This document shows, piece after piece, positions 28,687 through 61,238 of a stretch of DNA of 64,000 bases. A program made the translations under genes and the position numbers. How positions within the stretch are numbered: the stretch's first letter is position 1; every line of letters begins with the position of its first letter. Below the pieces are notes generated by a model. That model had not been told where the DNA came from and did no database searches. It worked only from the letters and a program-made list of their open reading frames with translations. The stretch is from Basidiobolus meristosporus CBS 931.73 (taxonomy: Eukaryota > Fungi > Basidiobolomycota): positions 70,046 through 134,045 of the forward strand of contig MCFE01000200.1 of NCBI GenBank assembly GCA_002104905.1. The letters run 5' to 3'.

Positions 28687-30375
28687 TTAATTCAGTACTT
28701 CCTTGGCTGATTTGATCAGCGTGTCCAGTGCGATCGCGCTCTCCTCCTTGGTGATGTTCAGCGCAGGAATCAATCGAATGGTGTCGTACACCGATGTCGT
28801 CAAAACCAACATGTCGTTCTGATAGCATTGGCCCGCCACCGCATCGCTGACCTTAGAGTTCAGCTTCTTCTGCAGGCCAGCCAGTCCGTTGCCATAAAAC
28901 TCCACGCCAATCATGAGCCCTAAGCCGCGCACGTCAACCTTGATGTCATGCTGTTGCAATAATGGAACAAGCTCGTTGTTCAGCCGAGAGAAGATCTCTT
29001 TCGAGCGCTCCTGCACGTTTTTCAGGAGATTCTCCTCCTCCATCACCTCCAAGGTGGCGATTGCTGCAGCACAGGAGACGGCGTTTCCTGAGTAGGTGCC
29101 TCCCTACGCAAAAGGTCAGTCACATCGATATTTGGTCCGCTCTACCAACAACGCCTTACCATGGAGCCCGGCGGCTGCTTGTCCATCAACTCCTTGCGAC
29201 TGACGATCCCGGAGATGGGGAATCCAGAGGCAATTCCCTTCGCCATCACCATGATATCCGGCACGACATCCGCGTGCTGGATGGCGAAGTACTTGCCGGT
29301 TCGCCCAAAGCCGCTCTGAACTTCATCAGCGATCAAGAGGATCCCGTGCTTGTCACAGATCTCCCGAACCCTTTGGACATATTCTGGGGAATGCTAGAGA
29401 TCAGCAGCCATCGCGTGCCCCACTTCCATGCAGGAGCTTACCTTTGGGTGGGACTACATAGCCTCCCTCCCCGAGCACCGACTCCATAATCAATGCTGCA
29501 GTGTCTGATGGGGCAGTTTGTTGCTTCAGCAGCAATTCAAGCTGCTCTATGGCGTATTCAATGCACAAGTCGTGACGAAGGGTGTCTTGAGGTACGGCCT
29601 TTTGGGTGGGTGAGTGAAGCGTGTAAGGGAATGGAGTGACGTAAACCCCGGGCTGTGCAGATGGTTAGTATCCGGCCAAGCGAGGGTTAGGATTTCTGGT
29701 AGAATACCATCAATGGGCCGAAGCCTGCGCTGTAGATCGTTTTCGAGGTTGTCAGCGACATGGTCCCAACAGTGCGTCCATGGTAAGAGCCTGTCAGATG
29801 AACTGTCAGTCGGATGGCGGGCATTGTTTCGGAGGGGATAAGGAGTCAACAAACCTTGCATTACGATGATATTGTGCTTCCCGGTCGCGTGTCTAGCGAG
29901 TTTGATAGCCGCTTCCACGGCTTCGGCACCTGAGTTCCAGAAGAAGAAGGTATCCAATTGTTTAGAAGGCATGATGGGCTTCAGTTTCTCAATGAGCTTA
30001 ACCATGGGCTCGTGGAAGAAGAGGTTCACCTACTCTTTCAAGTCAATAAAAGTCTTTCTATGCTACCTGTTATGCTGGTCTTACCTGGCCGTGAACCAGT
30101 TTTCCCACCTGTTCTTGGGCAGCCTTGACAACCTTGGGATGGCAATGACCTTGAGAGAAGACTCAGTACTGCAACAATACCCAGTGAAGACGAATAGAGC
30201 ATAATGTACCGGTGCTTGTTACTCCAATACCAGTGGTCAAATCCAGATACTTTTTCCCTTCGACGGTATAAACATACGAGCCGGAAGCCTTGGAAATGAC
30301 GAGATTGGTGGATCTTCCCACCCCTCTGGCAATATGTTGGAGACCTAGGGTACGTAACGCGTTTGAACTAGCCAT
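28687..30375 (-). CDS. Class-III PLP aminotransferase (4-aminobutyrate aminotransferase GabT/PuuE-like), multi-exon
   Basis: YLDLTTGIGVTSTG, FFWNSGAEAVEAAIKLAR, IADEVQSGFGRTG and DIMVMAKGIASGFP (PLP lysine). Substrate assignment is inference. Confidence 0.85.
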
Positions 30376-31357
30376 GGCTAAAGACGTATTCAGGATTAAG
30401 AGGTGACTTGACTACCTTATAAAGGGCAATACCATCATCGCCTGTAAACTATTTACTAGGACTGCATCACGTCAAATTACGTCGAAGGTGGGACTTTGAA
30501 TGGATGGACCAATGAGTTCTCTTTCTGTGGGTAGAGAATGAATCCCAGACTCCCAGGCAATCTTCACATTCCGATAATTAACGCTCGAAAATGATGCGAT
30601 TCGTCGATCATTGTGACGGCGCAACTAATTTCCTGAACGGAAGCCACTGCCACCGTGTGAGTCATCGACACTTCTCGTCGAGCCAAAGAGGAAAAGGTGA
30701 CAAGTGCATCTAGCCTAAAGAGTAAAGGGGATTGCGCGAGTGAAAAGGCATGTATCGATGAGCCAACAAGACAGAGAGAGTAACGCCTGAATAATGAAGA
30801 GTATATTGATGCTTCCACCCCATTGATTAATGCGACTACTGAAAGGATACGGTACCCATGCTGGTGCCCGACCATTTTCGAACTACACTAAACCCAATCT
30901 ATGAATTGGTGTTAAATTTGTCAATTTTGTCATAATAGTTGTGCTTGATGAGCCAAGTTGGTTAAAGTGATTGGGAACTTGGCGTGTAACATTAGCGGGA
31001 CTCTACTTCACATGCGAAGTCCAAGTGGTTTCATATTCTCGCTGTCCCGGAGTTGTTCGTTGGAATGTACGTCATGCTCCGAGAGGTGACATCTCAATAT
31101 CAACGTAGCAAAAATTAAGTTTGTGCCTTGAATGGGTTGATTGATGGGGTGGTAGCATAAGAGAAAATCAAGATCATAAACAACCATCTGAACTCGGCCG
31201 TTTACGGATTGAGTGAGACTGAAACTTGCCCCCAAAATAGGTCAAGGGATGTCAAGTCCGACAGGCCTTTCGAAACTATTCCACAAACCTTTAAATAGCC
31301 AAAGCTTCGGATGTGACCAACAAGACATTTTCTTCTGTCATTCAATTCGCTGCTAAC

Positions 31358-32947
31358 ATGACTTTCTCCTTGAATTCCACTGCTGGCATCGATGTCAACA
31401 AGCCCATCCTTCGCAACCTCCCCGTTTCCAAGTTGTATGAGCACGCTTTGCAGTACGAAAAGGGCACATATCTCAGCTCTGCTGGTGCCATCATCACTTC
31501 CTCTGGCAAGAAGACCGGAAGAAGCCCAAGCGATAAGCGCATTGTCGAGGAGAAGTCCACCAGCGGTGATATCTGGTGGGGCCCTGTAAACATTCCTTTG
31601 GAGGACCGTGTCTTCAGCATCAACCACGAAAGAGCTGTCGACTACCTCAACACCCGTGAGCGTCTCTATGTTCTCGATGGATTCGCTGGTTGGGATCCCA
31701 AGTACCGCATCAAGGTCAGAGTGATCTGCGCCCGTGCCTACCACGCTCTCTTCATGCGCAACATGCTCATCCGTCCCACTGCGGAGGAGCTCGAGAACTT
31801 TGGTGAGCCTGACTTCACCATCTTCAACGCTGGCCAGTTCCCTGCCAACCGTTACACCTCTGGCATGTCCAGCACCACCTCCGTTGCCATCAGCTTCGAG
31901 CGCAAGGAGTTCGTCATTCTCGGCACCGAGTACGCTGGCGAGATGAAGAAGGGAGTGTTCACCATCATGCACTACCTCATGCCCAAGGCTGGAGTTCTCT
32001 CCCTTCACTCCAGCGCCAACGAAGGACCTGATGGCGATGTGTCCTTGTTCTTCGGATTGTCTGGAACCGGCAAGACCACCTTGTCTGCTGATCCCAGCCG
32101 CTTCTTGATTGGTGATGATGAGCACTGCTGGACCGACAACGGGGTGTTCAACATCGAGGGTGGTTGCTATGCCAAGTGCATTGATCTCTCGGCTGAGAAG
32201 GAGCCCGAGATCTTCAATGCTATCCGCTTCGGCTCAGTGTTGGAGAACGTTGTGTTCGATGAGCACACCAGAGTTGTCGACTACACCGACTCATCTTTGA
32301 CCGAGAACACCCGTTGTGCCTATCCCATTGAGTACATTCCCAACGCCAAGATCCCATGCGTCGGTGGTCACCCCAAGAACATTGTCCTGTTGACCTGTGA
32401 TGCATTCGGAGTGTTGCCCCCAGTGGCCAAGCTCACCTCTGCCCAAGCCATGTACCACTTCATCTCTGGATACACTGCCAAGATTGCCGGTACCGAGGAG
32501 GGAGTCACCGAGCCCCAAGCCACCTTCTCCGCCTGCTTCGGCCAGCCGTTCCTTGTCTGGCATCCAGTCAAGTATGCCTCCATGCTTGCCGAGAAGATGA
32601 AGGAGCACAACACCAACGTGTGGTTGGTGAACACCGGATGGAACGGTGGTGCGTATGGTGTTGGCTCACGCATCTCCCTCAAGTACTCACGTGCCATCAT
32701 TGATGCCATCCACAATGGGGAGCTTGCCCAAGCCGAGTTCGAGAACTACCCCATCTTCAACATTGAGATTCCCAAGAGCGTCAGCAATGTTCCCAGTGAG
32801 GTGCTGAACCCCTCTGCTGCCTGGAAGGGCACCAAGGAGTCCTACGTTGCCACAGTCGAGAAGTTGGCTGGTCTGTTCAACGACAACTTCAAGTTGTACG
32901 CCGATCAAGCTACCCCAGAAATCCTCGCTGCTGGACCACAATTGTAA
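31358..32947 (+). CDS. PCK1: Phosphoenolpyruvate carboxykinase (ATP), copy 1, 529 aa
   Basis: [14 protein letters not shown], kinase-1a [23 protein letters not shown] and ENTR signatures; intronless. Confidence 0.98.
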
Positions 32948-33537
32948 AGAGTCTCTGGAAAATTCTTTTCAAATTACCGACTTATTTCAAAGTCCAATCA
33001 CCCAAATTTTGTACACACTCCACACCTGTTCACTAATCCACGGTATTCACCCAAATTGCATTAAAATTGAATCGCCATTAATCCAAAGCAATAAATTTCA
33101 CCATTCTGAAGAATAAGGTAATAAGATAAAATTGCAATTGATCTAGCAAAACGCAGAAGCCGGTTAATGAGGAATCACCGCTACATATAGAGTAACCAAA
33201 TTCCACACCGTAACATTCACGCCAAACCATGAGCGCGGCTGATGAACCGGATTTCTTGATTGATCAAATGAGTGATTGCCATCAGAATGGTGCGGAGAAT
33301 ATTGTGACAAATCTAGGTCTAAAAAAAATTGTGAGACTTGTATAAATAATCAAGATCTGAAATAAACATCTATATTCGGTCAGTTGCGGGTGGTTCCTAA
33401 GTGAAACCGCTCCCCAAAGCTGGAATCCATCTGTCAGGTTTGAGGAAAGTATACTCATTTGTGTGAAACACACTAGCAGATAAATAGAACGGGCATAGCT
33501 TACACCACACTACACATTCGGTGTTTCTGCTCCAAAT

Positions 33538-35127
33538 ATGGTTTTCTCTTTAAATCCCGCTTCTGGCATTGATGTCAACAAGCCCATCCTACGCAACCTC
33601 CCCGTTTCCAAGTTGTATGAGCACGCTTTGCAATACGAAAAGGGCACATATCTCAGCTCTGCTGGTGCCATCATCACTTCCTCTGGAAAGAAGACCGGAA
33701 GAAGCCCAAGCGATAAGCGCATTGTCGAGGAGAAGTCCACCAGCGGTGATATCTGGTGGGGCCCTGTGAACATTCCTTTGGAGGACCGTGTCTTCAGCAT
33801 CAACCACGAAAGAGCGGTCGACTACCTCAACACCCGTGAGCGTCTCTATGTTCTCGATGGATTCGCAGGTTGGGATCCCAAGTACCGCATCAAGGTCAGA
33901 GTGATCTGCGCCCGTGCCTACCACGCTCTCTTCATGCGCAACATGCTCATCCGTCCCACTGCGGAGGAGCTCGAGAACTTTGGTGAGCCTGACTTCACCA
34001 TCTTCAACGCTGGCCAGTTCCCTGCCAACCGTTACACCTCTGGCATGTCCAGCACCACCTCCGTTGCCATCAGCTTCGAGCGCAAGGAGTTCGTCATTCT
34101 CGGCACCGAGTACGCTGGCGAGATGAAGAAGGGAGTGTTCACCATCATGCACTACCTCATGCCCAAGGCTGGAGTTCTCTCCCTTCACTCCAGCGCCAAC
34201 GAAGGGCCTGATGGCGATGTGTCCTTGTTCTTCGGATTGTCTGGAACCGGCAAGACCACCCTGTCTGCTGATCCCAGCCGCTTCTTGATTGGTGATGATG
34301 AGCACTGCTGGACCGACAACGGGGTGTTCAACATCGAGGGTGGTTGCTATGCCAAGTGCATTGATCTCTCGGCTGAGAAGGAGCCCGAGATCTTCAATGC
34401 TATCCGCTTCGGCTCAGTGTTGGAGAACGTTGTGTTCGATGAGCACACCAGAGTTGTCGACTACACCGACTCATCTTTGACCGAGAACACCCGTTGTGCC
34501 TATCCCATTGAGTACATTCCCAACGCCAAGATCCCATGCGTCGGCGGTCACCCCAAGAACATTGTCCTGTTGACCTGTGACGCATTCGGAGTGTTGCCCC
34601 CAGTGGCCAAGCTCACCTCTGCCCAAGCCATGTACCACTTCATCTCTGGATACACTGCCAAGATTGCCGGTACCGAGGAGGGAGTCACCGAGCCCCAAGC
34701 CACCTTCTCTGCCTGCTTCGGCCAGCCGTTCCTTGTCTGGCATCCAGTCAAGTATGCCTCCATGCTTGCCGAGAAGATGAAGGAGCACAACACCAACGTG
34801 TGGTTGGTGAACACCGGATGGAACGGTGGTGCGTATGGTGTTGGCTCACGCATCTCCCTCAAGTACTCACGTGCCATCATTGATGCCATCCACAATGGAG
34901 AGCTTGCCCAAGCCGAGTTCGAGAACTACCCCATCTTCAACATTGAGATTCCCAAGAGTGTCAGCAGTGTTCCCAGTGAGGTGCTGAACCCCTCCGCCTC
35001 CTGGAAGGGTACCAAGGAGTCCTATGTTGCCACAGTCGAGAAGTTGGCTGGTCTGTTCAACGACAACTTCAAGTTGTACGCCGATCAAGCTACTCCTGAA
35101 ATTATCGCCGCCGGACCACAGTTATAA
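33538..35127 (+). CDS. PCK1: PEP carboxykinase (ATP), copy 2
   Basis: Same signatures; 1590 nt; intact. Confidence 0.98.
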
Positions 35128-35724
35128 CTACTAATAGCATAAAAGTACACATCGATATGTACCCACAATCTGCATTCATCATTAACATCACAGCTGCGCC
35201 TTGTACAAACTGTCATAATAATGCGATATTTCTAACGTCTTACGCAATAAAATCATGCTGAAAATCAACCTATCTGCGATGTGCCTTTAACGGACCGTTT
35301 ATAAGCTTAACAACTTCGTTGATATCCAGCTTCGAAAGATAATCGCGAAAAATGCCTTTCTTCATATTAGCTCCATTTGTCGAAATTCCTGTTTGCGTAA
35401 GTGTGTGCTCTACGGCTACACGTTGCAAACAATGATCACTTCGGTGAATGGCGGTGGATCTGACGTATTCCAATCGCCAGCCAATATTGTACTACAGGAT
35501 ATTTTGTGGGAATATCCCAGGCATGATCAAGATCGCTTATTTCTACATTTAGGGTCGGCCGTTTACGGAATGCCTGGAGTGAAACACCACCCCAAAGTTG
35601 GATGCACTCTGTCAAGTCCGACTGGAATGTAGGACATACGTGAGGAACGTCGAGGGATAAATAGCCAACGCTTCGGATGTTACCAGCAAGACATTCACTC
35701 CTGTCATTCATTCCCCCTCTCAAG

Positions 35725-37314
35725 ATGGCTTTCTCTTTGAATCCCGCTTCTGGCATTGATGTCAACAAGCCTGTCCTCCGCAACCTTCCCGTTTCCAAGT
35801 TGTATGAGCACGCTTTGCAATACGAAAAGGGCACATATCTCAGCTCTGCTGGTGCCATCATCACTTCCTCTGGCAAGAAGACCGGAAGAAGCCCAAGCGA
35901 TAAGCGCATTGTCGAGGAGAAGTCCACAAGCGGTGATATCTGGTGGGGCCCTGTGAACATTCCTTTGGAGGACCGCGTCTTCAGCATCAACCACGAAAGA
36001 GCTGTCGACTACCTCAATACCCGTGAGCGTCTCTATGTTCTCGATGGATTCGCTGGTTGGGATCCAAAGTACCGCATCAAGGTCAGAGTGATCTGCGCCC
36101 GTGCCTACCACGCTCTCTTCATGCGCAACATGCTCATCCGTCCCACTGCGGAGGAGCTCGAGAACTTTGGTGAGCCCGACTTCACCATCTACAACGCTGG
36201 CCAGTTCCCTGCCAACCGTTACACCTCTGGCATGTCCAGCACCACCTCCGTTGCCATCAGCTTCGAGCGCAAGGAGTTCGTCATTCTCGGCACCGAGTAC
36301 GCTGGTGAAATGAAGAAGGGAGTGTTCACCATCATGCACTACCTCATGCCCAAGGCTGGAGTTCTCTCCCTTCACTCCAGCGCCAACGAAGGGCCTGCTG
36401 GTGATGTGTCCTTGTTCTTCGGGTTGTCTGGAACCGGCAAGACCACCCTGTCTGCTGATCCCAGCCGCTTCTTGATTGGTGATGATGAGCACTGCTGGAC
36501 CGACAACGGAGTGTTCAACATCGAGGGTGGTTGCTATGCCAAGTGCATTGATCTCTCGGCTGAGAAGGAGCCCGAGATCTTCAATGCCATCCGCTTCGGC
36601 TCAGTGTTGGAGAACGTGGTGTTCGATGAGCACACCAGAGTTGTCGACTACACCGACTCATCTTTGACCGAGAACACCCGTTGTGCCTATCCCATTGAGT
36701 ACATTCCCAACGCCAAGATCCCATGCGTCGGTGGTCACCCCAAGAACATTGTCCTGTTGACCTGTGATGCATTCGGAGTGTTGCCCCCAGTGGCCAAGCT
36801 CACCTCTGCCCAAGCCATGTACCACTTCATCTCTGGATACACTGCCAAGATTGCCGGTACCGAGGAGGGAGTCACCGAGCCCCAAGCCACCTTCTCCGCC
36901 TGCTTCGGCCAGCCGTTCCTTGTCTGGCATCCAGTCAAGTATGCCTCCATGCTTGCCGAGAAGATGAAGGAGCACAACACCAACGTGTGGTTGGTGAACA
37001 CCGGATGGAACGGTGGTGCCTATGGTGTTGGCTCACGCATCTCCCTCAAGTACTCACGTGCCATCATTGATGCCATCCACAATGGAGAGCTTGCCCAAGC
37101 CGAGTTCGAGAACTACCCCATCTTCAACATTGAGATTCCCAAGAGCGTCAGCAATGTTCCCAGTGAGGTGTTGAACCCCTCTGCCTCCTGGAAGGGCACC
37201 AAGGAGTCCTATGTTGCCACAGTCGAGAAGCTGGCTGGTCTGTTCAACGACAACTTCAAGTTGTATGCCGATCAAGCGACTCCTGAAATCATCGCTGCTG
37301 GCCCACAATTGTAA
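35725..37314 (+). CDS. PCK1: PEP carboxykinase (ATP), copy 3
   Basis: Same signatures; ATG at 35725 gives 1590 nt. Confidence 0.98.
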
Positions 37315-38425
37315 ATTTCCACCATCACTGTAGCATCTCTTAACCCTTGCATCCCTACCTCACGTGAGCAATTTTGAATAAAACCATCCAATGCATTAAA
37401 CCTCAATTCACTTCTGTTCCTTATGTTTGGCTTCATTGAGAGCTTTGTTTGTCTACTCGGTTTGGAAGTGTTGACGAAATCCCAGGTTGTTGCAATCCTG
37501 GTCTGACCAATGATTAAAATGATTTCCTCTGCGTTGCAGTTTACCGAATTAATACTCGATCGGAGTTTCAGAAGTTTGCTGATTAGCGGATCCGTCAGTT
37601 GACCGACTTGGCGGATTGTGGTTTGCATGATTCGTACATTACGGCCGGCAAGGTGATAGCGGCGGGGTGATAGTAAACGGAACCGGTGTGCCTGATCGGG
37701 AGCTTGAAAGAACCCGTCACGCAATGCATGTGAACGCATGAATGGGAGATGCTTGATAGGTATGGGTAGCCAGCGGGATTCCCCGACTGTAGCTCATCTG
37801 GTACCTTTTCACGATCCCGGAGAACAACAACCACTTGTCACTTCGGTGGTGATCCATCCATTTGACAGCATTACTCGTACGACATCATGGAGCCACTTCC
37901 CAATGCGTAAGTCGCTTTGATTTGCGAGGTGGGATGGTAGTCATGAATATCACTGCATCCGCACTGAATGATCCAATTACTGTGCTGTTGGGTGCAGGCC
38001 GGAAATGGAACCACCAGTGATAGTGAGCCCGATCCTCACGCTGTACAGTACATCGCCATGGCTAATGGAATTTATTAGCCTAGGAGCTGAGACACGGAGC
38101 ATTACGGAGATGAGGGCCCATTCCAAATACGGGATTCCCGATGGTTAGTTCAATTCGCAGTTACACCATTGGCCCACCTAGTGAATGTGTTTCACAGAAT
38201 ATGGAGAATGGGAGCCTGCTCCCTCCTGAATCTAATGAAACGACCGTAAACCCGTAATGACGCAGAACGATGTTAACCGTGGTGTAATACAGCCTACAAT
38301 CTGAACGAATTGGTCACTAATCTGAGACAACCACCCAAACGATGGAGGACCTCTGGTGCGATGATATAAGGGTTGAATTGCGTTACCGCTTTCCACATCC
38401 GCTGCCAATTCTCTTTCCTCCAAAA

Positions 38426-40015
38426 ATGGCGTTCACTTTAAACCCTGCCTCTGGTATCGATATTTCTAAGCCAGTCTTGCGAAACCTTCCAGTCTCCAAG
38501 CTGTACGAGCATGCTTTACAATACGAGAAGGGAACCTCTCTCAGTTCAGCTGGCGCCATCATCACTTCCTCTGGCAAGAAGACCGGAAGAAGCCCAAGCG
38601 ACAAGCGCATTGTCGAGGAGAAGTCCACAAGCGGTGATATCTGGTGGGGCCCTGTGAACATTCCTATGGAGGACCGCGTCTTCAGCATCAACCACGAAAG
38701 AGCTGTTGACTACCTCAACACCCGTGAGCGTCTCTATGTTCTCGATGGATTCGCTGGTTGGGATCCCAAGTACCGCATCAAGGTCAGAGTGATCTGCGCC
38801 CGTGCCTACCACGCTCTCTTCATGCGCAACATGCTCATCCGTCCCACTGCGGAGGAGCTCGAGAACTTTGGTGAGCCCGACTTCACCATCTACAACGCTG
38901 GCCAGTTCCCTGCCAACCGTTACACCTCTGGCATGTCCAGTGCCACCTCCGTTGCCATCAGCTTCGAGCGCAAGGAGTTCGTCATTCTCGGCACCGAGTA
39001 CGCTGGCGAGATGAAGAAGGGAGTGTTCACCATCATGCACTACCTCATGCCCAAGGCCGGAGTTCTCTCTCTTCACTCCAGCGCCAACGAAGGGCCTGAT
39101 GGCGATGTGTCCTTGTTCTTCGGGTTGTCTGGAACCGGCAAGACCACCCTGTCTGCTGATCCCAGCCGCTTCTTGATTGGTGATGATGAGCACTGCTGGA
39201 CCGACAACGGGGTGTTCAACATCGAGGGTGGTTGCTATGCCAAGTGCATTGATCTCTCGGCTGAGAAGGAGCCCGAGATCTTCAATGCCATCCGCTTCGG
39301 CTCAGTGTTGGAGAACGTTGTGTTCGATGAGCACACCAGAGTTGTCGACTACACCGACTCATCTTTGACCGAGAACACCCGTTGTGCCTATCCCATTGAG
39401 TACATTCCCAACGCCAAGATCCCATGCGTCGGTGGTCACCCCAAGAACATTGTCCTGTTGACCTGTGACGCATTCGGAGTGTTGCCCCCAGTGGCCAAGC
39501 TCACCTCTGCTCAAGCCATGTACCACTTCATCTCTGGATACACTGCCAAGATTGCCGGTACCGAGGAGGGAGTCACCGAGCCCCAAGCCACCTTCTCCGC
39601 CTGCTTCGGCCAGCCGTTCCTTGTCTGGCATCCAGTCAAGTATGCCTCCATGCTTGCCGAGAAGATGAAGGAGCACAACACCAACGTGTGGTTGGTGAAC
39701 ACCGGATGGAACGGTGGTGCGTATGGTGTTGGCTCACGCATCTCCCTCAAGTACTCACGTGCCATCATTGATGCCATCCACAGTGGAGAGCTTGCCCAAG
39801 CCGAGTTCGAGAACTACCCCATCTTCAACATCGAGATTCCCAAGAGTGTCAGCAATGTTCCCAGTGAGGTGCTGAACCCCTCCGCTGCCTGGAAGGGCAC
39901 TAAGGAGTCCTACGACGCTACCGTCGAGAAGTTGGCTGGTCTGTTCAACGAGAACTTCGAATTGTACGCCGATCAAGCTACTGCAGAAATCGCAGCTGCT
40001 GGACCCAAAATCTAA
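38426..40015 (+). CDS. PCK1: PEP carboxykinase (ATP), copy 4
   Basis: Same signatures; ATG at 38426 gives 1590 nt; variant C-terminus (ENFEL...GPKI). Confidence 0.98.
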
Positions 40016-40714
40016 ATTCAAAACCGAATTACTATTTATGAGCATTCTTTTAAATCTCCTACTCCACCCATTTGTATAGTACAATAACAATTCAAGTGTA
40101 ATAAATCGAATCAATCCACAAACCAATCCAACCGCGACCAATTTAAATCGGCGAGTACGTATGCATATTTCGGGATTCACCAGCTAATTTTAGCCAACCT
40201 CTGCCCTTCGCGCGATTGGCCGAGTATATAGCAGAGATTCAAAGCTCATCTATGTAGAGGTTGGAGCATTTCCTAGATAATCAATGAGCAAACATTTGGA
40301 TCCAATGATTCCCTTCAGACGACTTCAAATGGCCTGACAACTCTCCACAATGAATTTCCGTACTTGTAGGTGGTGCAAATTCCCATTTTCGATAGCCACC
40401 GACAACTCAATTATGATGTACGAGGTCCAAATCCATCGAATGTGTCAGATTTGATCCTCAGAGTGAAACACGGGAGATATCGTATTGAATACGGGTGATT
40501 CAAAAAAAGATTGGATTGCTCAATAATATGTGGGGATTTGTCCAGTTCGGCATAGTGCAAACCCAACGGATTCATCAATTTTCCAACTAAGGCAAGTGTT
40601 ACAAGTCCAGTTTAGACCCAAGCATCAACGTAACGGACATCCACTTCACTTGCACTCCACTATAAAATAGAACAGGAAATGAACATATCCTTCAGCCCTC
40701 TATACTCTTTAGCC

Positions 40715-42304
40715 ATGGTTTTCACCCTCAATAGTACCTCCGGAATTGATATCAACAAGCCGGTACTCAGGAATCTTCCTGTTTCCAAGTTGTATGAACA
40801 CGCTTTACAATATGAGAAAGGAACCTCTCTCAGTTCAGCTGGCGCCATCATCACTTCCTCTGGCAAGAAGACCGGAAGAAGCCCCAAAGACAAGCGTATT
40901 GTCGAGGAGAAGTCCACCAGTGGTGATATCTGGTGGGGCCCTGTAAACATTCCTTTGGAGGACCGCGTCTTCAGCATCAACCACGAAAGAGCTGTTGACT
41001 ACCTCAACACCCGCGAGCGTCTCTATGTTCTCGATGGATTCGCAGGTTGGGATCCCAAGTACCGCATCAAGGTCAGAGTGATCTGCGCCCGTGCCTACCA
41101 CGCTCTCTTCATGCGCAACATGCTCATCCGTCCCACTGCGGAGGAGCTCGAGAACTTTGGTGAGCCCGACTTCACCATCTTCAACGCTGGCCAGTTCCCT
41201 GCCAACCGTTACACCTCTGGCATGTCCAGCACCACCTCCGTTGCCATCAGCTTCGAGCGCAAGGAGTTCGTCATTCTCGGCACCGAGTACGCTGGTGAGA
41301 TGAAGAAGGGAGTGTTCACCATCATGCACTACCTCATGCCCAAGGCTGGAGTTCTCTCCCTTCACTCCAGCGCCAACGAAGGGCCTGATGGCGATGTGTC
41401 CTTGTTCTTCGGATTGTCTGGAACCGGCAAGACCACCTTGTCTGCTGATCCCAGCCGCTTCTTGATTGGTGATGATGAGCACTGCTGGACCGACAACGGG
41501 GTGTTCAACATCGAGGGTGGTTGCTATGCCAAGTGCATTGATCTCTCGGCTGAGAAGGAGCCCGAGATCTTCAATGCCATCCGCTTCGGCTCAGTGTTGG
41601 AGAACGTGGTGTTCGATGAGCACACCAGAGTTGTCGACTACACCGACTCATCTTTGACCGAGAACACCCGTTGTGCCTATCCCATTGAGTACATTCCCAA
41701 CGCCAAGATCCCATGCGTCGGTGGTCACCCCAAGAACATTGTCCTGCTGACCTGTGATGCATTCGGAGTGTTGCCCCCAGTGGCCAAGCTCACCTCTGCC
41801 CAAGCCATGTACCACTTCATCTCTGGATACACTGCCAAGATTGCCGGTACCGAGGAGGGAGTCACCGAGCCCCAAGCCACCTTCTCCGCCTGCTTCGGCC
41901 AGCCCTTCCTTGTCTGGCATCCAGTCAAGTATGCCTCCATGCTTGCCGAGAAGATGAAGGAGCACAACACCAACGTGTGGTTGGTGAACACCGGATGGAA
42001 CGGTGGTGCCTATGGTGTTGGCTCACGCATCTCCCTCAAGTACTCACGTGCCATCATTGATGCCATCCACAATGGAGAGCTTGCCCAAGCCGAGTTCGAG
42101 AACTACCCCATCTTCAACATTGAGATTCCCAAGAGCGTCAGCAATGTTCCTAGTGAGGTCCTGAACCCCTCTGCTGCCTGGAAGGGCACTAAGGAGTCCT
42201 ACGATGCTACTGTTGAGAAGTTGGCTAGCCTGTTCAATGAGAACTTCGAGTTGTATGCTGATCAAGCTACCGCCGAGATCGCCGCTGCTGGACCTAAAAT
42301 TTGA
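40715..42304 (+). CDS. PCK1: PEP carboxykinase (ATP), copy 5
   Basis: Same signatures; ATG at 40715 gives 1590 nt; C-terminus ...GPKI. Confidence 0.98.
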
Positions 42305-42581
42305 ATCATTAGCAACATCTAATTTGTAAATTACTGCATCATATACATCAACAATAAACCCGATTTACTCGAATCTACTCGAATCCTGAGAAATCTATCA
42401 TTGCCGATTCAAACGAATCTTCGAATTGCTTAAGTAAATCTGATTCAATGTTGTCTCCTGTGATATGGTAAATGCGATTTAACTTGGTTCCGGGTGTAGT
42501 GCGTGGATAAGACCAAGGATAACATGGGACCATGAATGTTCGTTGAAGGTTGCAAATAAGAAAATCGCTTTATTAAGGAAT

Positions 42582-43349
42582 TTATTTGTCGGCAATCTTC
42601 TTGGTACCGCGGAGAAGACCGGTACGACGGGCAGCAATAAGACCGACCTTTTGACCAGCAGAGGAGTCGCGGGCAACGGTAGAAGCATGACCGATGTGTT
42701 GGTGATTACCACCACCGTGAGGATGGTCGACGGGGTTCATGGCAACACCACGAGTCTTAGGCCAGCAGTTACGCTTAACTCTGTATTTGTGGTAAGCACG
42801 ACCAGCCTTAAGCAAGGGCTTGTCAATACGACCACCACCAGCAACGATACCAATGGTGGCACGGCAGGTAGATTGGATGACCTTCTTGGAGCCGGAAGGA
42901 AGCTTGACTCTGGTCTTACCATCATCGTGGTTGTGGGAAATGATGGTGGCGTAGTTACCGGAAGCACGGGCAATGGCACCACGGTCACCAACACTCTCTT
43001 CAATGTTACAGATGATGGTACCCTCAGGCATAGCAGAGAGGGGCAAGACGTTACCAATGGTCAAAGCAGCCTTCTTACCGCAGTAGACGAATTGTCCAGT
43101 GTACATACCCTCAGTGGCGATGAAGGTTTGGGTGTGGGTCTTGTATCTGTAGGGATCACGGAATTGGACCTTGGCGAGGGGAGCACCACGTCCAGGATCG
43201 TGAATGATCTCCTTGACGATACCACGAATGTAACCATTACGTTCAGCAAAATCAAGAGGGCGAAGTTGAGCGGCACCCTTTCTAAGGCGGGTGTGGGACT
43301 TGAAGATACCACCGGGACCCTTTCTCTGAGCACGAATGACGCGACCCAT
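42582..43349 (-). CDS. RPL2: 60S ribosomal protein uL2 (yeast L2, mammalian L8), 255 aa
   Basis: [11 protein letters not shown] start; [19 protein letters not shown] signature. Confidence 0.98.
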
Positions 43350-43826
43350 TTTATCTATGAACAAGGAGGGGTTCTGGTTAGTGTTTGGCTCTTGGAACAA
43401 TCCCCATGGAATGGATGCATGGCATTGTAGAAAGATGGATGAATTACCTTACAGAGGTCAAATGCGTTAGGTTGGAAGGAAAGAAAGATTGATTCTCTTT
43501 GCGTGGCTACTTATTTGATTCCTGGAAAATTTTACTATGAATTTTCTTGGATCTCCTCACTTATCCCGGGCAAATTTGTGGAATTTCTTTTTTGTCCTGC
43601 TGTTGTCGCTTGGATCTTAATCAAATTTTGTGCATATCGGAAAACACTGTGATTTTACATGATCTCTCGTTATTTACGATAGCGATAATTTTATTTTTGT
43701 GCACGGTTATATTTTATATTTATATTGAGTGGAGATTCGAATTTGATTGAATTATTTCGAACAAAATTTATTGATTGAAAGTGTAGATGCAGATGATGAA
43801 TATGAATTAGCTACTTCGTTATTAAT

Positions 43827-45415
43827 TTACAATTGAGGTCCAGCAGCAATAATCTCTGGTGTAGCTTGATCAGCGTACAACTTGAAGTTGTCGTTGAACA
43901 GACCAGCCAACTTCTCGACTGTGGCAACGTAGGACTCCTTGGTACCCTTCCAGGCAGCAGAGGGGTTCAGCACCTCACTGGGAACATTGCTGACACTCTT
44001 GGGAATCTCAATGTTGAAGATGGGGTAGTTCTCGAACTCGGCTTGGGCAAGCTCTCCATTGTGGATGGCATCAATGATGGCACGTGAGTACTTGAGGGAG
44101 ATGCGTGAGCCAACACCATACGCACCACCGTTCCATCCGGTGTTCACCAACCACACGTTGGTGTTGTGCTCCTTCATCTTCTCGGCAAGCATGGAGGCAT
44201 ACTTGACTGGATGCCAGACAAGGAACGGCTGGCCGAAGCAGGCGGAGAAGGTGGCTTGGGGCTCGGTGACTCCCTCCTCGGTACCGGCAATCTTGGCAGT
44301 GTATCCAGAGATGAAGTGGTACATGGCTTGGGCAGAGGTGAGCTTGGCCACTGGGGGCAACACTCCGAATGCGTCACAGGTCAACAGGACAATGTTCTTG
44401 GGGTGACCACCGACGCATGGGATCTTGGCGTTGGGAATGTACTCAATGGGATAGGCACAACGGGTGTTCTCGGTCAAAGATGAGTCGGTGTAGTCGACAA
44501 CTCTGGTGTGCTCATCGAACACCACGTTCTCCAACACTGAGCCGAAGCGGATGGCATTGAAGATCTCGGGCTCCTTCTCAGCCGAGAGATCAATGCACTT
44601 GGCATAGCAACCACCCTCGATGTTGAACACTCCGTTGTCGGTCCAGCAGTGCTCATCATCACCAATCAAGAAGCGGCTGGGATCAGCAGACAAGGTGGTC
44701 TTGCCGGTTCCAGACAATCCGAAGAACAAGGACACATCGCCATCAGGCCCTTCGTTGGCGCTGGAGTGAAGGGAGAGAACTCCAGCCTTGGGCATGAGGT
44801 AGTGCATGATGGTGAACACTCCCTTCTTCATTTCACCAGCGTACTCGGTGCCGAGAATGACGAACTCCTTGCGCTCGAAGCTGATGGCAACGGAGGTGGT
44901 GCTGGACATGCCAGAGGTGTAACGGTTGGCAGGGAACTGACCAGCATTGAAGATGGTGAAGTCGGGCTCACCAAAGTTCTCGAGCTCCTCCGCAGTGGGA
45001 CGGATGAGCATGTTGCGCATGAAGAGAGCGTGGTAGGCACGGGCGCAGATCACTCTGACCTTGATGCGGTACTTGGGATCCCAACCAGCGAATCCATCGA
45101 GAACATAGAGACGCTCGCGGGTGTTGAGGTAGTCGACCGCTCTTTCGTGGTTGATGCTGAAGACGCGGTCCTCCATAGGAATGTTCACAGGGCCCCACCA
45201 GATATCACCACTGGTGGACTTCTCCTCGACAATACGCTTGTCTTTGGGCTTCTTCCGGTCTTCTTGCCAGAGGAAGTGATGATGGCACCAGCTGAACTGA
45301 GGTAGGTACCCTTTTCGTACTGCAAAGCATGCTCATATAACTTTGCTACAGACAGATTGCGAAGAACAGGCTTATTGGTATCAATACCAGATTCGGAGTT
45401 GAGAGTGAAGGCCAT
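43827..45415 (-). pseudogene. PCK1: PEP carboxykinase (ATP), copy 6, with a 1-bp deletion (true pseudogene or sequencing error)
   Basis: 1589 nt instead of 1590; a C4 run (AGCCCCAAAGAC in copy 5) is C3 at 45246-45248; otherwise intact. Confidence 0.9.
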
Positions 45416-46516
45416 ATTGGTACTAATATGGATGTTTGAAACTGATTGTTGCTCGTTCCATGTACCAGTGCTGTCTTTTATATTGTTTGCTCAAGATGCT
45501 GTTCCTGTTAATGAATCCATTGCTTCACGGCGTGCTTCTAAACATCTTCCTATTATGATAGACCAATAGAACTCCCTTACAGCTGTGTACTGAAACCAAT
45601 ATGCCGACATATCCCGTTGTACAAATAAATCGACGAATTTGTTTATTTCGAGAATCACTCCGAAACTACCCGTGGGTTGTGAACAACCAATTTGAAGAGT
45701 CATCGAATCATCGCCTTATTGAGCAGCTTTTGAATCTTAATGCCCATTGTTTCATGGGCTTAAATTAAATGGGGTACCTGTCATCATCGTAGAACACAAA
45801 CACATCTACTCGGTTGAAATCAACTTGTGGGATCTGATTTCTAATTATAGCAGCATGATTCACATAACTTGTTTTAAGTAAGAATCCGTAACCTTTTCAT
45901 TTTGGGTCAGGGATTACCAAGGTAGAAAGAAGGTTTCAATTCGGAGATACAATTTCTATCCCATTTTGAAGTTCCTACTTATTAATCTATTATTTGGCAG
46001 ATGTCGGAATTTCAATTCACAAGCTATCGAAGCTGAGGATCTCAAAGCTGACATTAGTGCTAAGGTAGTTTCTTATGCGTTTGGTAGATCACCCATACGA
46101 TTTGACACATGCCAATTGTGGGTGCTTATCATTAAGACCGCTAGCAAGCATAATGGGCTTGGGTATGAGATTGGATGAGAAACATTTATTTGAGAGCCAT
46201 AAATGGCATTTGTTTCAAAATCTGCTTAGTAATACCTAGTAAACAACTTTTCGGTTTCTCCGGTTGGCATTGTCCGTAATAGTGGACTTTACGCACAATA
46301 GGGCTGGCGTGCAGCTATAGCTAATTTTGAAAAAGTTTTAATGTGCTTGGTGACCGTATTTATATCTCAATATTGTTTATTTTTAACAGGGTAGTGATAC
46401 AACAAATACTAATCCGAAGACAACGGAATCAAGAACCGAATAAAATGAAATATTCATGCGACCTACTGTTAGATAGTATTTGTAAGAGGGGAGTTTTCAT
46501 GCTTAGCTATGACTTT

Positions 46517-48106
46517 CTATACACGAGGGCCAGCTGCTACGATTTCAGGAGTGGCTTTGTCGGCATAGAGTTTGAAGTTATCGTTGAACAGACCAGCCAA
46601 CTTCTCGACTGTGGCAACGTAGGACTCCTTGGTACCCTTCCAGGCAGCAGAGGGGTTCAGCACCTCACTGGGAACATTGCTGACGCTCTTGGGAATCTCA
46701 ATGTTGAAGATGGGGTAGTTCTCGAACTCGGCTTGGGCAAGCTCTCCATTGTGGATGGCATCAATGATGGCACGTGAGTACTTGAGGGAGATGCGTGAGC
46801 CAACACCATAGGCACCACCGTTCCATCCGGTGTTCACCAACCACACGTTGGTGTTGTGCTCCTTCATCTTCTCGGCAAGCATGGAGGCATACTTGACTGG
46901 ATGCCAGACAAGGAACGGCTGGCCGAAGCAGGCGGAGAAGGTGGCTTGGGGCTCGGTGACTCCCTCCTCGGTACCGGCAATCTTGGCAGTGTATCCAGAG
47001 ATGAAGTGGTACATGGCTTGGGCAGAGGTGAGCTTGGCCACTGGGGGCAACACTCCGAATGCGTCACAGGTCAACAGGACAATGTTCTTGGGGTGACCAC
47101 CGACGCATGGGATCTTGGCGTTGGGAATGTACTCAATGGGATAGGCACAACGGGTGTTCTCGGTCAAAGATGAGTCGGTGTAGTCGACAACTCTGGTGTG
47201 CTCATCGAACACCACGTTCTCCAACACTGAGCCGAAGCGGATGGCATTGAAGATCTCGGGCTCCTTCTCAGCCGAGAGATCAATGCACTTGGCATAGCAA
47301 CCACCCTCGATGTTGAACACTCCGTTGTCGGTCCAGCAGTGCTCATCATCACCAATCAAGAAGCGGCTGGGATCAGCAGACAGGGTGGTCTTGCCGGTTC
47401 CAGACAACCCGAAGAACAAGGACACATCGCCATCAGGCCCTTCGTTGGCACTGGAGTGAAGAGAGAGAACTCCAGCCTTGGGCATGAGGTAGTGCATGAT
47501 GGTGAACACTCCCTTCTTCATCTCACCAGCGTACTCGGTGCCGAGAATGACGAACTCCTTGCGCTCGAAGCTGATGGCAACGGAGGTGGTGCTGGACATG
47601 CCTGAGGTGTAACGGTTGGCAGGGAACTGGCCAGCGTTGAAGATGGTGAAGTCGGGCTCACCAAAGTTCTCGAGCTCCTCCGCAGTGGGACGGATGAGCA
47701 TGTTGCGCATGAAGAGCGCGTGGTAGGCACGGGCGCAGATCACTCTGACCTTGATGCGGTACTTGGGATCCCAACCAGCGAATCCATCGAGAACATAGAG
47801 ACGCTCACGGGTGTTGAGGTAGTCAACAGCTCTTTCGTGGTTGATGCTGAAGACGCGGTCCTCCAAAGGAATGTTCACAGGGCCCCACCAGATATCACCA
47901 CTGGTGGACTTCTCCTCGACAATGCGCTTATCGCTTGGGCTTCTTCCGGTCTTCTTGCCAGAGGAAGTGATGATGGCGCCAGCTGAGCTGAGATAGGTTC
48001 CTTTTTCGTAGTTCAAAGCATTCTCGTACAGTTTTGCCACTGAAAGATTGCGAAGAACAGGCTTATTGGTATCGATGCCGTATGATTCGTTTAGTTTGAA
48101 AGCCAT
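46517..48106 (-). CDS. PCK1: PEP carboxykinase (ATP), copy 7
   Basis: Same signatures; 1590 nt; termini [10 protein letters not shown] and ...GPRV. Confidence 0.98.
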
Positions 48107-49497
48107 TGTAATAAAGCTGTAGCTGATGCTTAACAGTCATCATGGAGCAGTTCTTTTATAGCTTGTACGGACATTTACTCAGGGTACCCGGTATACTCCG
48201 ACACTTGATATATTCATCTACCATTTATAATGGTGTAACTCTGGCCAAGCAGCAATGCCTATTGCAGTATAGTCGAAATGTTCTTGCACTTCGTGGTAAG
48301 AAACCAAATATAAATGCACCCACATCATGCTAATAGCCCTCTATAGTTATGTTTTGATATTCCGCACATGGGAGTGAATTGGTACCGTTTCAGAATCCAT
48401 CCCAATGTAGAATCAGGCTAGATACGAATCACTCTTTTTAAATTCCCGGTTTCAGGGTGGAGTTGACAGAAGGCATTGGAAGGGAAGAATTCACACACAG
48501 AAGTCTAAGTGCGAGAAGATATCCGGATTGTTGATCAATGATCATCTACATCAATGGATAGCGCCGGTGGGACCAATTAGGTCACCCTACATCGGGGTGG
48601 GCACCTCAAGCACCTCTACTAGTGCCACTTGAAACCTACGCTTGAGTAGGAATGGATGAAACCACCTTCCTTTTCGGTAGAAGACACCGGTTTCTATTTA
48701 TTATAGTTTACAGTGAGTAAGCCGGTGGGGATTGAGGAGAATATGTAGCGTCTGGCGATTCCTTCGCAGTTAGGGTTGAAACGGAGCCCATAAATGGAAA
48801 TCAGGAATAGAGTTACCTTGGCCATTTCACTATTAAACCTAAGCTTCTGGACGCAGCTCACTAGCCTGAAACCTATGGATTCTATTTTAAGCTACCTCGT
48901 GAGTAATTATTCGTCTGGCGAGGTATCCCCAAGAAAAATCGCTAGATTGGGGTCAGTAAAAGCAGTACCATGTGTGATGTGATTTAAGCATCATAGCATT
49001 CTCGTCTGGTTGCGTCTGGCTAAATCATTTCGTCTTAGTATTTCATATTGCCCTGTTGAGACGCCGAATACTGATTTTCAAGTAGAGTTGTGGTGTGTCA
49101 ATGATAATGTTGCCACCGATTTATAGTGAAATCCTCGAGATTGTATTTAGAAACAAATATCAGAATTAGACTAGCAATATCTAATGTCACTTCGAGTGTT
49201 ATCAACTCATTCCTTAGCAATAATCTAAGTAGAATCTTTGATTGTATGAATGGGTTGTGTGTAAACTGAATAGTTACAGCAGCTATAAGCATATCGCAGC
49301 CATTACCTGGTCCTCAAAGGTAAAGCCTTTGTCTCCACATTAATATCCCCTGAATAATGTCCATGTAATGATGGTTGATATAATCATCCTGGTTATGGTA
49401 GTATAAGCTAGGCAGTCTTTCTTTAGACTAACAGTAACATTTACCAGAGCAAAATAGACTGTTAGAGACAGCAATTTTGAAGTTCGTAGCTTGTTAC

Positions 49498-52400
49498 TGT
49501 TGTAAGAGTCTTGGAGATATTGCAAGTGATTTGGGAGGACAAGTAGATTATGTGGTTTTCACTTAATGATTTATTGAATGTAAAAGTAGTATTTATACTT
49601 TTACATGGTCTTGGCGCAAAAACCACATAGAATAGATTTAGGAAGGTCCCAAGAACATGTGTGTCAAGTTTGGGGCTGTTTGAACAACTTTGAGATTTTT
49701 CATGTTCTGGGTACCTGATATCTTGATGAAAATATTCCAAGTAAGTCCCAATAAGGATTTTGGTCTGTATTCTCTAAGACTTGGAGGTAGTGATCTAAAT
49801 GACTAAGTTAGGTCAATATTTAGGTGGAATTCCAAATTTTTACAGCAATCAGTGTATCTTAAGCAGATATCAGCAGTTCCTTTTAGGTATCTAAAAATCT
49901 GCTTTACTGCTGCAATATGATCAGATCCATAGTTCTGATTAGGCTGGCTGACAACTACACTGAATATGAGATATCTGGACAAGTTACAAGCATGATATAC
50001 ATCAGACTGCCAACCATAGATTGATAAGGAAACTTGGGGCTTTTAGATGGCACCAAGCTGTCTTGATCTGGTTGAGTTTTGACCAAGTCAAGGTCTGTCT
50101 CCATTAGGCTAGCTGCCAGTTTATAGTCTTCCATTTGGTACTTCTTTAGTGTATCTGGAGTATACCTGCAATAGTCTGGGTACTTCTGTCTATGAAGAAC
50201 TTTACCCTTAAGTAGTAACTGAATTCTCCTAGATTGGACATCTTGAACACTTTAGAAAGGCTGGAATTAGTCTCTTCCAATGTTGCTAGGTTATTGGCAG
50301 CTATAATAAGATCATCCACATATAGAATTAATAGAATTGGATTTGCTCTATCTGGCTTATAGTGTATACTTTAGTCAGCATTATTTCTTTTAAAACTCAA
50401 AGATTCCAAATAAGAATTCATTTTGCAATTTCAGGCTCTTGGTCACTGTTAGAGTCCATATAGAGATTTTTTAAGCTTGCAGACCAAATGGGGATTATCT
50501 TGGTTAATAGACCCATCAGACTGGTCCATATATATATCCTCATCAAGTTCACTCAAAATGCAGCTTTTACATCCAATTGGTGTATAGAAAACTTATATTT
50601 GGCTGCAATAGCTAATATCAATCTGATGGAATTAAACTTGGCTACTGGTGCAAAGGTCTCAGTATAGTCAAGCCCTTTTGTTTGAAAGTATTCTTTGGCC
50701 ACAAGTCTTGCTGTGTATCCTTCAATTGCACCATCAGCCTTATACTTTGTCTTAAAGACCCATCAGCATCCAATTGATTTTTGGTTGGTTGGTAACCTTG
50801 CTTAGTCCAAAATTTGATTTTCCATTAGGGCCTGATATTTGTCAGTTATTGCAGATCTCCAAAACTTTGTCTGAGGGCTATTGAGGGCCTCTTTTACAGT
50901 CTGGGGCTCATCAATATGGACTCAATAGGCATAGGCTAGGTTTGTACCCTCATTGATATAGTAATTTGGGCTATTTCTGGTCTGGTTGGATCTTCTGGCA
51001 TTTGACACTGGAATGATCACCTCTGGTATATTCCTGGGCACTGATTCAGGCTGAGCTACGGTTGCAGAGTCTATTGGAGTGAAAAAATATCATTGTTTTG
51101 CTCTGATTCAATCCCAACAATTGGTGGACTTGAGATCAGATTTTTGTCATCATCTGATGTCATTTTTTGTGAAAATTTTGAGTTTTCATCACACAACAAA
51201 TTGCTGGACTTGATCAGCTTCTTTGCTTTGCTATTGTAGAGTTTATACGCTTTACTCTCATTGCAGTAGCCCAAAAATATGCATTTTACACTTTTTGACT
51301 AAATTTTGACCAATTTCCATACAGTTTCTTGGCATATGTTGTACACCCAAATATTGTTAGATGTTCTGCACTTGGTCTGCATCCATAACATGCTTCAAAT
51401 GGAGTAGAATCACATAGTATTCTGTTATAACTCCTATTTTTAAGGTATACAGTGGTAGCAACTGATTCCACCCAAAAATCATAGGATATTTTTTGATCAT
51501 GGATCATAGATCTTGCCATGTCAATTATTGATCTGTTTGCACATTCTGCTACTCCATTTTGCTGTGGGGAGTATGGTACAGTAGTCTCTTGCTTGATCCC
51601 ATAAATTTGCAAAAGTGGCTGAAGAGTTTTGAGGTATAGTCTCCACCATTGACAGATCATATTTTCTTGATTTTTCTCCAGTTTCCCTCTCCACCATGAC
51701 TTTAAGCTCCCTGGATTTAGACAGAGCTTGTTCCTTTCTCTTCATGAAGCAGACCAACATAACATCATCCTGCCTAAGGATAAATTTTGTATATGTCCAC
51801 ACAGATATGAGTGAAATAGATCTAATTTTTTCTTAGTCTTGATTGACCCAGAGCTCATGAATAGCTGTTAGGCTTGTTTATCATATATGCAGGCTTCACA
51901 GTGCTCCATATTAGCTGGGGGAGCAACTTCTACTCCAGAAATCAGCTGATCTTTGATCAATTTGCTCAAATAATCCAAATTGATGTGTCCAAATCTCCTG
52001 TGCCAAAGCATTGATGTTTTTTCATTCAAGTTACTTATATTGGCTTCCAGATATGATGGAATATGAGTTAACTTGTACAGATTCTTATCTCTGATACCCA
52101 AAGCAATAGGAGCACCATTTTTTTCAGTGATGCTGCATCCAGAATTGTCAAAGCTGAAACTGAGTCCTTCTGCTGTGGCCTTGCTTAAAGATAGTAGGTT
52201 CTGAGCTATTTCTGATACATAGAGTACTTCTTCAAAGGTCAGTGTATGGCTTCCTTCACTGCTTCTAAGGCTTACTTCGATAATTCCTTCCCCCACTGCA
52301 TCAAGTGTTCTATTGTCACCCATGAAAACCTTCTTAATTGGAGTTTCTTGATATTGAGTAAGAAGTTCTTTTTGGTGTGTAAAGTGTTGAGATGCTCCAG

Positions 52401-53622: not shown

Positions 53623-54182
53623 GTTACAAGATTCTAGGGTGTATTAGAAGTGACCTTGAGAAGTAGAATTGAATGACATTCACTTTTGGTTTTATTGAGT
53701 AGCTAACCAGTATTTGTACTTGTAGGGGGAGTTTGTAAGACTGGTGATCAGAGAGCTTTAAGAAGATCCCAGTAATCTGTGTATAAAGTCTGAGGGCTTC
53801 AGTGCATGTCTCTCTCACTCTAAAATCTATGAATATGGATCCTGTTTGATTTGATAGCATAAAACAACAAGTGCTAACATGTGCATGAAAAATGCACACA
53901 CAAGGTACATTTGCTATCTACTGATTTTCATGATGAGTAGAATGGATTGATTGATGGAGAGCAGCTTGATGTACGTCATCAGCCAAGATTAGCTGCTGCC
54001 AATACTTATAGGTTTTCTAAGAGACTTGGAGCGGTGGGCCTTCATCCTATATCACATTGCTCAGGATGCGGCATTTGTTCTCTCTCCCTACTAGCCCATT
54101 CTTGCACAAATCTGATTAGACACTTATTGGTGATTTCGAGCAAGATGGAAACTTCAAATTATTACCTTATTTATAAACAATC

Positions 54183-54264
54183 GACACTTTGGCGGAGTGG
54201 TTAACGCGGTGCCCTGCTAAGGCATTTCCCTATGGGAGCGCAGGTTCGAATCCTGCAGGTGTCG
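54183..54264 (+). tRNA. tRNA-Ser(GCT), unit 1
   Basis: Cloverleaf; GTGCC-CT-GCT-AA-GGCAT arm; long variable arm; GTTCGAATC. Confidence 0.95.
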
Positions 54265-57226: not shown

Positions 57227-57231
57227 AGTTT

Positions 57232-61233: not shown

Positions 61234-61238
61234 AGTTT

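Follow-up and report, generated by a model that had tools for sequence, protein, structure and literature searches.

A tandem array of seven phosphoenolpyruvate carboxykinase genes in Basidiobolus meristosporus: a probable old amplification with a homogenised coding core and several promoter classes

ATP-dependent phosphoenolpyruvate carboxykinase, PEPCK(ATP), converts oxaloacetate and ATP to phosphoenolpyruvate (PEP), CO2 and ADP. The reaction is the committed step of gluconeogenesis and the gene is single-copy in model fungi. In a 64,000-nt stretch of contig MCFE01000200.1 of Basidiobolus meristosporus CBS 931.73 (hereafter the window), seven PF01293 genes for this enzyme are found between positions 31358 and 48106, five on the forward strand and two on the reverse strand. 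Such a locus raises the question of whether the copies are genuine, how old they are, and what distinguishes one from another when they appear to encode the same enzyme. The answer favored here, with rather more confidence than doubt, is that the locus is a real and old PEPCK amplification of Basidiobolus in which the coding core has been homogenised by gene conversion, leaving one enzyme under several promoter classes.

The PEPCK genes were located from a listing of open reading frames (ORFs) and by a tblastn search with the second copy, c2, as the query. As shown in Table 1, the copies are named c1 to c7 in order of position and together form array A. None of the seven contains an intron, the start-to-start distances range from 2180 to 2701 nt, and the spacers of 590–1522 nt are mostly unalignable. 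The orientation of the array flips at a ribosomal protein gene, uL2, located between c5 and c6. An intact 529-aa ORF is present in six of the seven copies, the exception in this assembly being c6. The initial annotation, which described seven intronless 529-codon genes in 16.7 kb with a spacing of 2.2–2.7 kb, five on one strand and two on the other, and each with different intergenic DNA, was correct with respect to gene number, introns, strands and spacing. It requires adjustment at two points: c6 is 1589 nt in length instead of 1590 nt, and homology is seen among the promoters of c1, c2 and c3 over their proximal ~200 bp.

All seven genes of array A are already present in GenBank as gene models. 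Exact matches to proteins of B. meristosporus CBS 931.73 (GCA_002104905.1) were obtained for c1–c4 and c7, and c5 and c6 are represented by the altered models ORX94628.1 and ORX94630.1. Both of these models look wrong. In ORX94628.1 (c5), the first ~20 codons are swapped for an upstream exon (40350–40415), and in ORX94630.1 (c6, 519 aa), an artificial intron spans a frameshift (45246–45330) and removes the GRSPxDK region.

From their sequences, the array A genes are ordinary fungal PEPCKs of the PCK1/acuF type (EC 4.1.1.49) with a predicted catalytic activity. The PF01293 profile covers the copies from end to end (764–766 bits, where the cut-off is 26.5; positions 3–465 of the 465 in the profile; E = 1e-230), and the best relatives among solved structures are ATP-dependent PEPCKs such as that of Trypanosoma cruzi (1ii2, 1e-174). 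A P-loop (GxxGxGKT), a kinase-2 motif (LIGDDEH) and a GRSPx motif, which we take to be the nucleotide- and substrate-binding motifs of the PEPCK_ATP family, can be read in the six intact copies and in the two frames of c6. The NTGW, P-loop and GRSPx motifs are discernible in the translations of all copies. The C-terminal tripeptides differ among copies (PQL, PKI, PRV, PKL); differential peroxisomal targeting peculiar to the array was considered as an explanation and rejected, as GP[QKR][LIV] is the usual end of PEPCKs from early-diverging fungi.

The closest proteins outside of the genus are fungal, with 74–80% identity, and belong to Dimargaris, Coemansia, Neoconidiobolus, chytrids and Allomyces; the best 120 matches are from early-diverging fungi, including Zoopagomycota, chytrids and Blastocladiomycota. 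In a maximum-likelihood tree, all Basidiobolus PEPCK copies form one clade (99/95) among Zoopagomycota sequences, and a second B. meristosporus array, B, is sister to array A together with the Basidiobolus ranarum gene r1 (100/99). This placement indicates vertical descent and not bacterial acquisition. A bacterial transfer had been suggested by a step in GC content at 22–48 kb and by Trypanosoma and Thermus as top matches in the PDB, and it is ruled out by the fungal nearest proteins and the vertical tree. The higher GC content at 22–48 kb is that of a gene island flanked by AT-rich copia elements, which coincide with a drop from ~0.52 to ~0.39. A 751-aa metagenomic PEPCK match (P0009; L005 2213–4468, ENA ERZ27320628 NODE_2970) is bacterial, adjoins an ECF sigma factor gene, and is irrelevant to the Basidiobolus array; overlapping tblastn segments suggest an internal duplication or insertion in this enzyme.

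Array B is located on contig MCFE01000004.1, where EBP and Aa_trans precede the four PEPCK genes (+, +, -, +) and RhoGEF follows them. Its proteins are 532 aa in length and 83% identical to those of array A. With four copies in array B and seven in array A, there are 11 PEPCK loci in B. meristosporus. A 12.2-kb contig duplicates part of array B at ~99% identity. Two of the four array B copies shift frame (L004 7755–9338 and 12612–14148, MCFE01000004.1) and their counterparts on the 12.2-kb contig (L001) are intact; these frame breaks are either indel errors of the assembly or the mark of a second haplotype.

The arrangement is also found in a second species. A B. ranarum locus is syntenic with the window at 22–33 kb, presenting an Aa_trans gene, an arrestin gene, a class-III aminotransferase gene and PEPCK r1, with a further copy, r2, beginning 2.5 kb downstream of r1 at the contig end. 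Two additional B. ranarum contigs of 1.4 kb each contain the 3' end of one copy, a spacer of ~720 bp and the 5' end of the next. From r1, r2 and these two contigs, B. ranarum has at least four tandem PEPCK copies, and its short-read assembly is interrupted at the start of the homogenised core. Outside of the genus, PEPCK is solitary at all five loci sampled (Neoconidiobolus thromboides, Dimargaris cristalligena, Tieghemiomyces parasiticus, Coemansia sp. RSA 2611 and Allomyces macrogynus). Thus, a PEPCK array is seen only in Basidiobolus and is exceptional relative to these five loci, as had been supposed of its size; it is not, however, confined to one species. No report of a tandem PEPCK array in fungi was found in the literature searched, in agreement with the earlier impression that none of this size had been described, and no paper was found that joins PEPCK with Basidiobolus or with Entomophthoromycotina/Zoopagomycota. 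With respect to gene structure, PEPCK is intronless in all Basidiobolus copies, Dimargaris and Tieghemiomyces, the N. thromboides gene has a short intron after codon ~73 (L006 10237–10285), and the neighboring Basidiobolus Aa_trans and aminotransferase genes have several exons.

Could the array have been inflated by the assembly? Fewer true copies might have been multiplied by long-read misassembly or by haplotigs, and there is redundancy elsewhere in the assembly, namely the 12-kb contig that is ~99% identical to part of array B, along with frame breaks of the homopolymer type. Since the 5' end, the 3' end and the spacer are particular to each of the seven copies, the array is not the product of a collapse or duplication. 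The promoters also differ in all seven copies, the array encloses an unrelated gene, uL2, and B. ranarum shows the same tandem layout. Four sequencing runs were compared with positions 40001 to 46000 of the window (6,000 letters). A separate DNA run of short reads from the same study yielded contigs that span four junctions between spacers and genes in this interval with no rearrangement (c4 to c5, c5 to uL2, uL2 to c6, and c6 to its upstream spacer), the first of these bridges extending from the 3' end of c4 through the spacer into the 5' end of c5. In run X1, word depth was 566–1058 in the cores and 110–233 in the spacers; this depth is not a copy number and was not used as a count. An assembly artefact is therefore very improbable and can be regarded as essentially excluded, and the initial view that the assembly is neither collapsed nor duplicated is sustained.

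The reading frame of c6 deserves separate consideration. The gene reads in two frames because it is one C short (CCC, compared to CCCC in c5). No indel was listed at the break in the DNA-run contigs, and coverage of that exact base by a contig is unconfirmed. As the deletion is at a homopolymer site, and as the two array B copies with frame breaks are intact in a contig of ~99% identity, the c6 frameshift may be an assembly error.

The distribution of differences along the genes provides the evidence for gene conversion. Of 157 variable sites in the coding sequence, 51 are within the first 100 nt and 50 within the last 190 nt, leaving 0–9 sites per 100 nt in the middle. The synonymous divergence (dS) of the core is 0.03–0.06 among c1–c7, compared to 0.8–1.1 between array A and array B and 1.4–1.5 between array A and B. 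ranarum r1. The first ~130 nt and the last ~150 nt are near synonymous saturation; over the first 45 codons, dS is saturated for most pairs. With the unconverted ends combined, the mean proportion of synonymous differences (pS) is 0.54, the corresponding nonsynonymous value (pN) is 0.080, and pN/pS is 0.15. The pS of the ends is ~0.25 among c1–c3, up to 0.69 in other pairs, and 0.76 between array A and B. ranarum. From these values, the older duplications date from about the time of the split between B. meristosporus and B. ranarum, and the sequence proper to each copy is under purifying selection.

Within the core, 46 of 91 informative site pairs fail the four-gamete test, all four combinations being present, which argues for repeated exchange among the copies, the inverted ones included. 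Core identity within the genome exceeds that between species despite the older duplication, and promoters of the c1–c3 type are shared with B. ranarum contigs. The GC content at third codon positions (GC3) reaches 0.73 in the core, compared to 0.50 for the B. ranarum gene and 0.45–0.67 for the 5' ends; the high core value would fit either GC-biased conversion or stronger selection on codons. Taken together, the sequences describe duplicates that are old, selected and homogenised by gene conversion.

What distinguishes the copies may be found upstream of the genes. The sequence CGG-N7-CGG occurs on the sense strand at eight sites in six of the seven array A promoters and is absent upstream of c5 and from all array B promoters. 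Over the window as a whole, 19 occurrences were counted where 5.8 would be expected; eight of the 19 are the promoter sites and seven are one coding site repeated in each copy. When spacings of 0–14 were compared in four orientations, only the direct sense N7 arrangement was enriched (8 matches versus 0–2), and eight matches were never reached when the same CGG triplets were placed at random 20000 times. At -171 the B. ranarum r1 promoter has the site CGGCCATTTACGG, which differs by a single base from that of c1 and c3, and the site is also present in r2 and in contig L010. In c1, c2, c3, r1 and L010, the motif is positioned at -161 to -172. An alignment of c1, c2, c3, r1, L009 and L010 revealed a conserved module with fixed spacing that consists of CGG-N7-CGG (-161 to -172), TGAAAC, CCCCAAAG, CTGTCAAGTCCGAC and TAAATAG. 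The promoters of c4, c6, c7 and r2 are different: the motif is at other positions, and a TATAAAA box is located near -54 to -67.

The promoters thus fall into three classes or more: class I (c1–c3), class II (c4, c6 and c7) and a motif-free class (c5 and array B). The suggestion in the initial annotation of condition- or stage-specific promoters gains direct sequence support from these classes. The factors AcuK and AcuM, activators of gluconeogenesis in Aspergillus, are Zn2Cys6 proteins of the Rds2/Ert1 type. In Aspergillus nidulans they recognise CCGN7CCG, with PEPCK (acuF) as one of their most conserved targets (PMC12719309). By analogy, an AcuK/AcuM-type pair may act on the Basidiobolus PEPCK promoters. 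The yeast carbon source-responsive element bound by Cat8/Sip4 was not found in any array A promoter. Control by CreA/Mig1 was considered and set aside, the SYGGRG sites being scattered with no pattern in the promoters. The 7- and 8-mers common to all seven promoters were no more frequent than in shuffled sequences, and only CGG-N7-CGG and the class I module stand out.

Transcription could be followed in run X3, which belongs to the same study (2013, 27 Mb of contigs) and in which contigs show presence only. The run is RNA-like: depth over uL2 is 7e4–1.3e5 and over the spacers 0, and Illumina adapter tails are present. Contigs of X3 cover the c4 stop codon and 3' untranslated region (UTR) (40001–40339), and another reaches the 3' end that is specific to c7 (...ADKATPEI). 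None covers the unique ends of c5 or c6, and contigs of this kind cannot show absence. At least c4 and c7 are transcribed, and nothing follows for the other copies.

The favored history would begin with old duplications of a fungal PCK1/acuF gene that gave rise to two paralogous arrays, A and B. Repeated conversion between copies in both orientations would then have kept the ~1.27-kb core nearly identical, with promoters, UTRs and both ends of the coding sequence (the first ~130 and last ~150 nt) escaping conversion and diverging under purifying selection. The outcome would be one enzyme driven by several promoter classes, of which class I is conserved between two species. It is plausible that the family supplies more PEPCK, differently timed, for growth on amino acids and lipids. 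Purifying selection on old copies fits retention by selection, and the syntenic neighbors, an amino-acid transporter and an aminotransferase, fit the use of amino acids and lipids. Basidiobolus is a fungus of protein-rich, sugar-poor substrates, among them insect remains and the gut contents and dung of amphibians and reptiles, a lifestyle that fits a demand for gluconeogenic capacity. B. meristosporus is gut-associated (PMC3281927). Several points weigh against this history: dosage and regulatory specialisation are both inferred, gene conversion alone could preserve the cores even if the individual copies were not selected, the c6 reading frame is broken in the assembly, and some copies may be silent, with the unique ends of c5 and c6 unseen in one RNA-like run.

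Alternatively, the array could be non-adaptive, the by-product of a genome given to local duplication and free conversion, with conversion from intact neighbors keeping the ORFs open and no advantage that is specific to PEPCK. The frameshift in one of seven array A copies and the frame breaks in two of four array B copies, within a contig of 280 kb, can be cited for such a process. It is harder to reconcile with unconverted ends that are near synonymous saturation and yet have a pN/pS of 0.15, which indicates that each copy has long been under purifying selection, or with an array and promoter module conserved in B. ranarum and a specific CGG-N7-CGG kept in six of seven promoters. On balance this explanation is unlikely, although it carries some weight. 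A different proposal is that the enzyme runs the other way. The ATP-PEPCK reaction is reversible, and kinetoplastids (trypanosomatids) and parasitic worms use it for carboxylation. The extra copies might serve the conversion of PEP to oxaloacetate in a hypoxic gut, for anaplerosis or a succinate-type fermentation with a gain of ATP, with the motif-free copies released from gluconeogenic control. The T. cruzi enzyme as best solved-structure match, the lack of CGG-N7-CGG at c5 and array B, and the gut association of the organism (PMC3281927) can be cited in its favor. The T. cruzi match, however, reflects which structures have been solved, and the true nearest relatives are fungal; the catalytic cores are identical among copies with no kinetic specialisation visible, and most copies have the gluconeogenic-type motif. 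Carboxylation as the purpose of the extra copies is thus quite improbable. A combined and rather speculative possibility, to which little credence is given, is an 11-gene family in which conversion keeps the enzyme the same and expression is divided among at least three promoter classes, with c5 and array B outside of AcuK/AcuM-type control and running constitutively or carboxylating in a hypoxic gut phase. If true, such a use of PEPCK in the gut phase would be a metabolic switch not described in fungi.

The old amplification favored here can also be compared to known systems. Like fungal PCK1/acuF genes in general, the Basidiobolus genes belong to the same family and clade, present the same catalytic motifs and, in most array A promoters, have CGG-N7-CGG. 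Those genes normally occur singly or, in early-diverging fungi, as two or three dispersed paralogues, whereas in B. meristosporus 11 loci are distributed over two tandem arrays and driven by several promoter classes, of which some are motif-free. Tandem arrays under concerted evolution, such as yeast CUP1 and other dosage arrays or the housekeeping-gene arrays of Trypanosoma brucei (PMC1855330), likewise consist of adjacent paralogues with an identity within the array that far exceeds that of orthologues. Mosaic variants and a homogenisation confined to the coding core with divergent flanks are also shared with them. In contrast to these, the units of the PEPCK array are not copies of a whole repeat, each gene having its own monocistronic promoter and UTRs, and it includes two inverted copies, an embedded unrelated gene, and old duplications in place of a recent amplification. 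PEPCK is moreover a cytosolic enzyme of central metabolism, neither secreted nor peripheral, and its two arrays are older than the split between the two Basidiobolus species.

Table 1. Positions of the PEPCK genes, promoter sites and neighboring genes in the window
Feature	Position	Strand	Remarks
PEPCK c1	31358-32947	+	intact, 529 aa; exact match to a GenBank B. meristosporus protein
PEPCK c2	33538-35127	+	intact, 529 aa; PF01293 E = 5.6e-230
PEPCK c3	35725-37314	+	intact, 529 aa; in-frame upstream ATG at 35677
PEPCK c4	38426-40015	+	intact, 529 aa; 3' UTR in the RNA-like run to ~40339
PEPCK c5	40715-42304	+	intact, 529 aa; sole array A copy without upstream CGG-N7-CGG
PEPCK c6	43827-45415	-	1589 nt; frameshifted in the assembly
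PEPCK c7	46517-48106	-	intact, 529 aa; most divergent ends of the copies
uL2 (RPL2/RPL8) ribosomal protein gene	42582-43349	-	intronless, 255 aa; between c5 and c6
CGG-N7-CGG, c1 promoter	31195-31207	+	-163; within the class I module
CGG-N7-CGG, c2 promoter	33377-33389	+	-161
CGG-N7-CGG (two), c3 promoter	35442-35454, 35556-35568	+	
CGG-N7-CGG, c4 promoter	38095-38107	+	-331
CGG-N7-CGG (two), c6 promoter	45604-45616, 45660-45672	-	
CGG-N7-CGG, c7 promoter	48188-48200	-	-94
C3 run, site of the 1-nt deletion in c6	45246-45248	-	CCCC in c5
Class-III aminotransferase exons	28687-30375	-	syntenic neighbor, also in B. ranarum; exons searched separately
Arrestin-domain gene	25148-26320	+	syntenic neighbor of the array
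Aa_trans amino-acid transporter exon	22981-23736	-	Aa_trans genes likewise found beside array B and the locus in B. ranarum

The surroundings of the array include two further kinds of repeated sequence. ORFs of copia-type long terminal repeat retrotransposons flank the gene island at 17956–21095 (-) and ~51286–53442 (-). The left element has RVT_2 and integrase/gag-pre-integrase ORFs, and the right element is broken into short gag and integrase pieces. A stretch of 156 bp in the degenerate copia gag (53298–53452) is 74% identical to a sequence just upstream of B. ranarum r1 (L002 8519–8672) and is probably a fragment of a related retroelement. From 53953 to 64000, the window contains at least 2.5 units of a tandem repeat of ~4007 bp with nine tRNA genes each (Ser-GCT, Gly-GCC, Lys-CTT, Met-CAT, Glu-CTC, Met-CAT, Ser-AGA, Ile-AAT and Lys-TTT).

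With 11 loci in two arrays, and with conservation across two Basidiobolus species, this is the largest fungal PEPCK amplification of which any trace was found. Concerted evolution of a tandem array of metabolic genes is a known process, and this PEPCK example is apparently unreported. The locus may serve as a clean natural case of gene conversion restricted to the coding core, with the promoters free to diverge, and the unique 5' and 3' ends make the expression of each copy directly measurable. Since the conserved promoter module holds a CGG-N7-CGG site, an ancient control of the AcuK/AcuM type is suggested, and by this analogy the gluconeogenic control exerted through CGG-N7-CGG may reach back to the early-diverging fungi.

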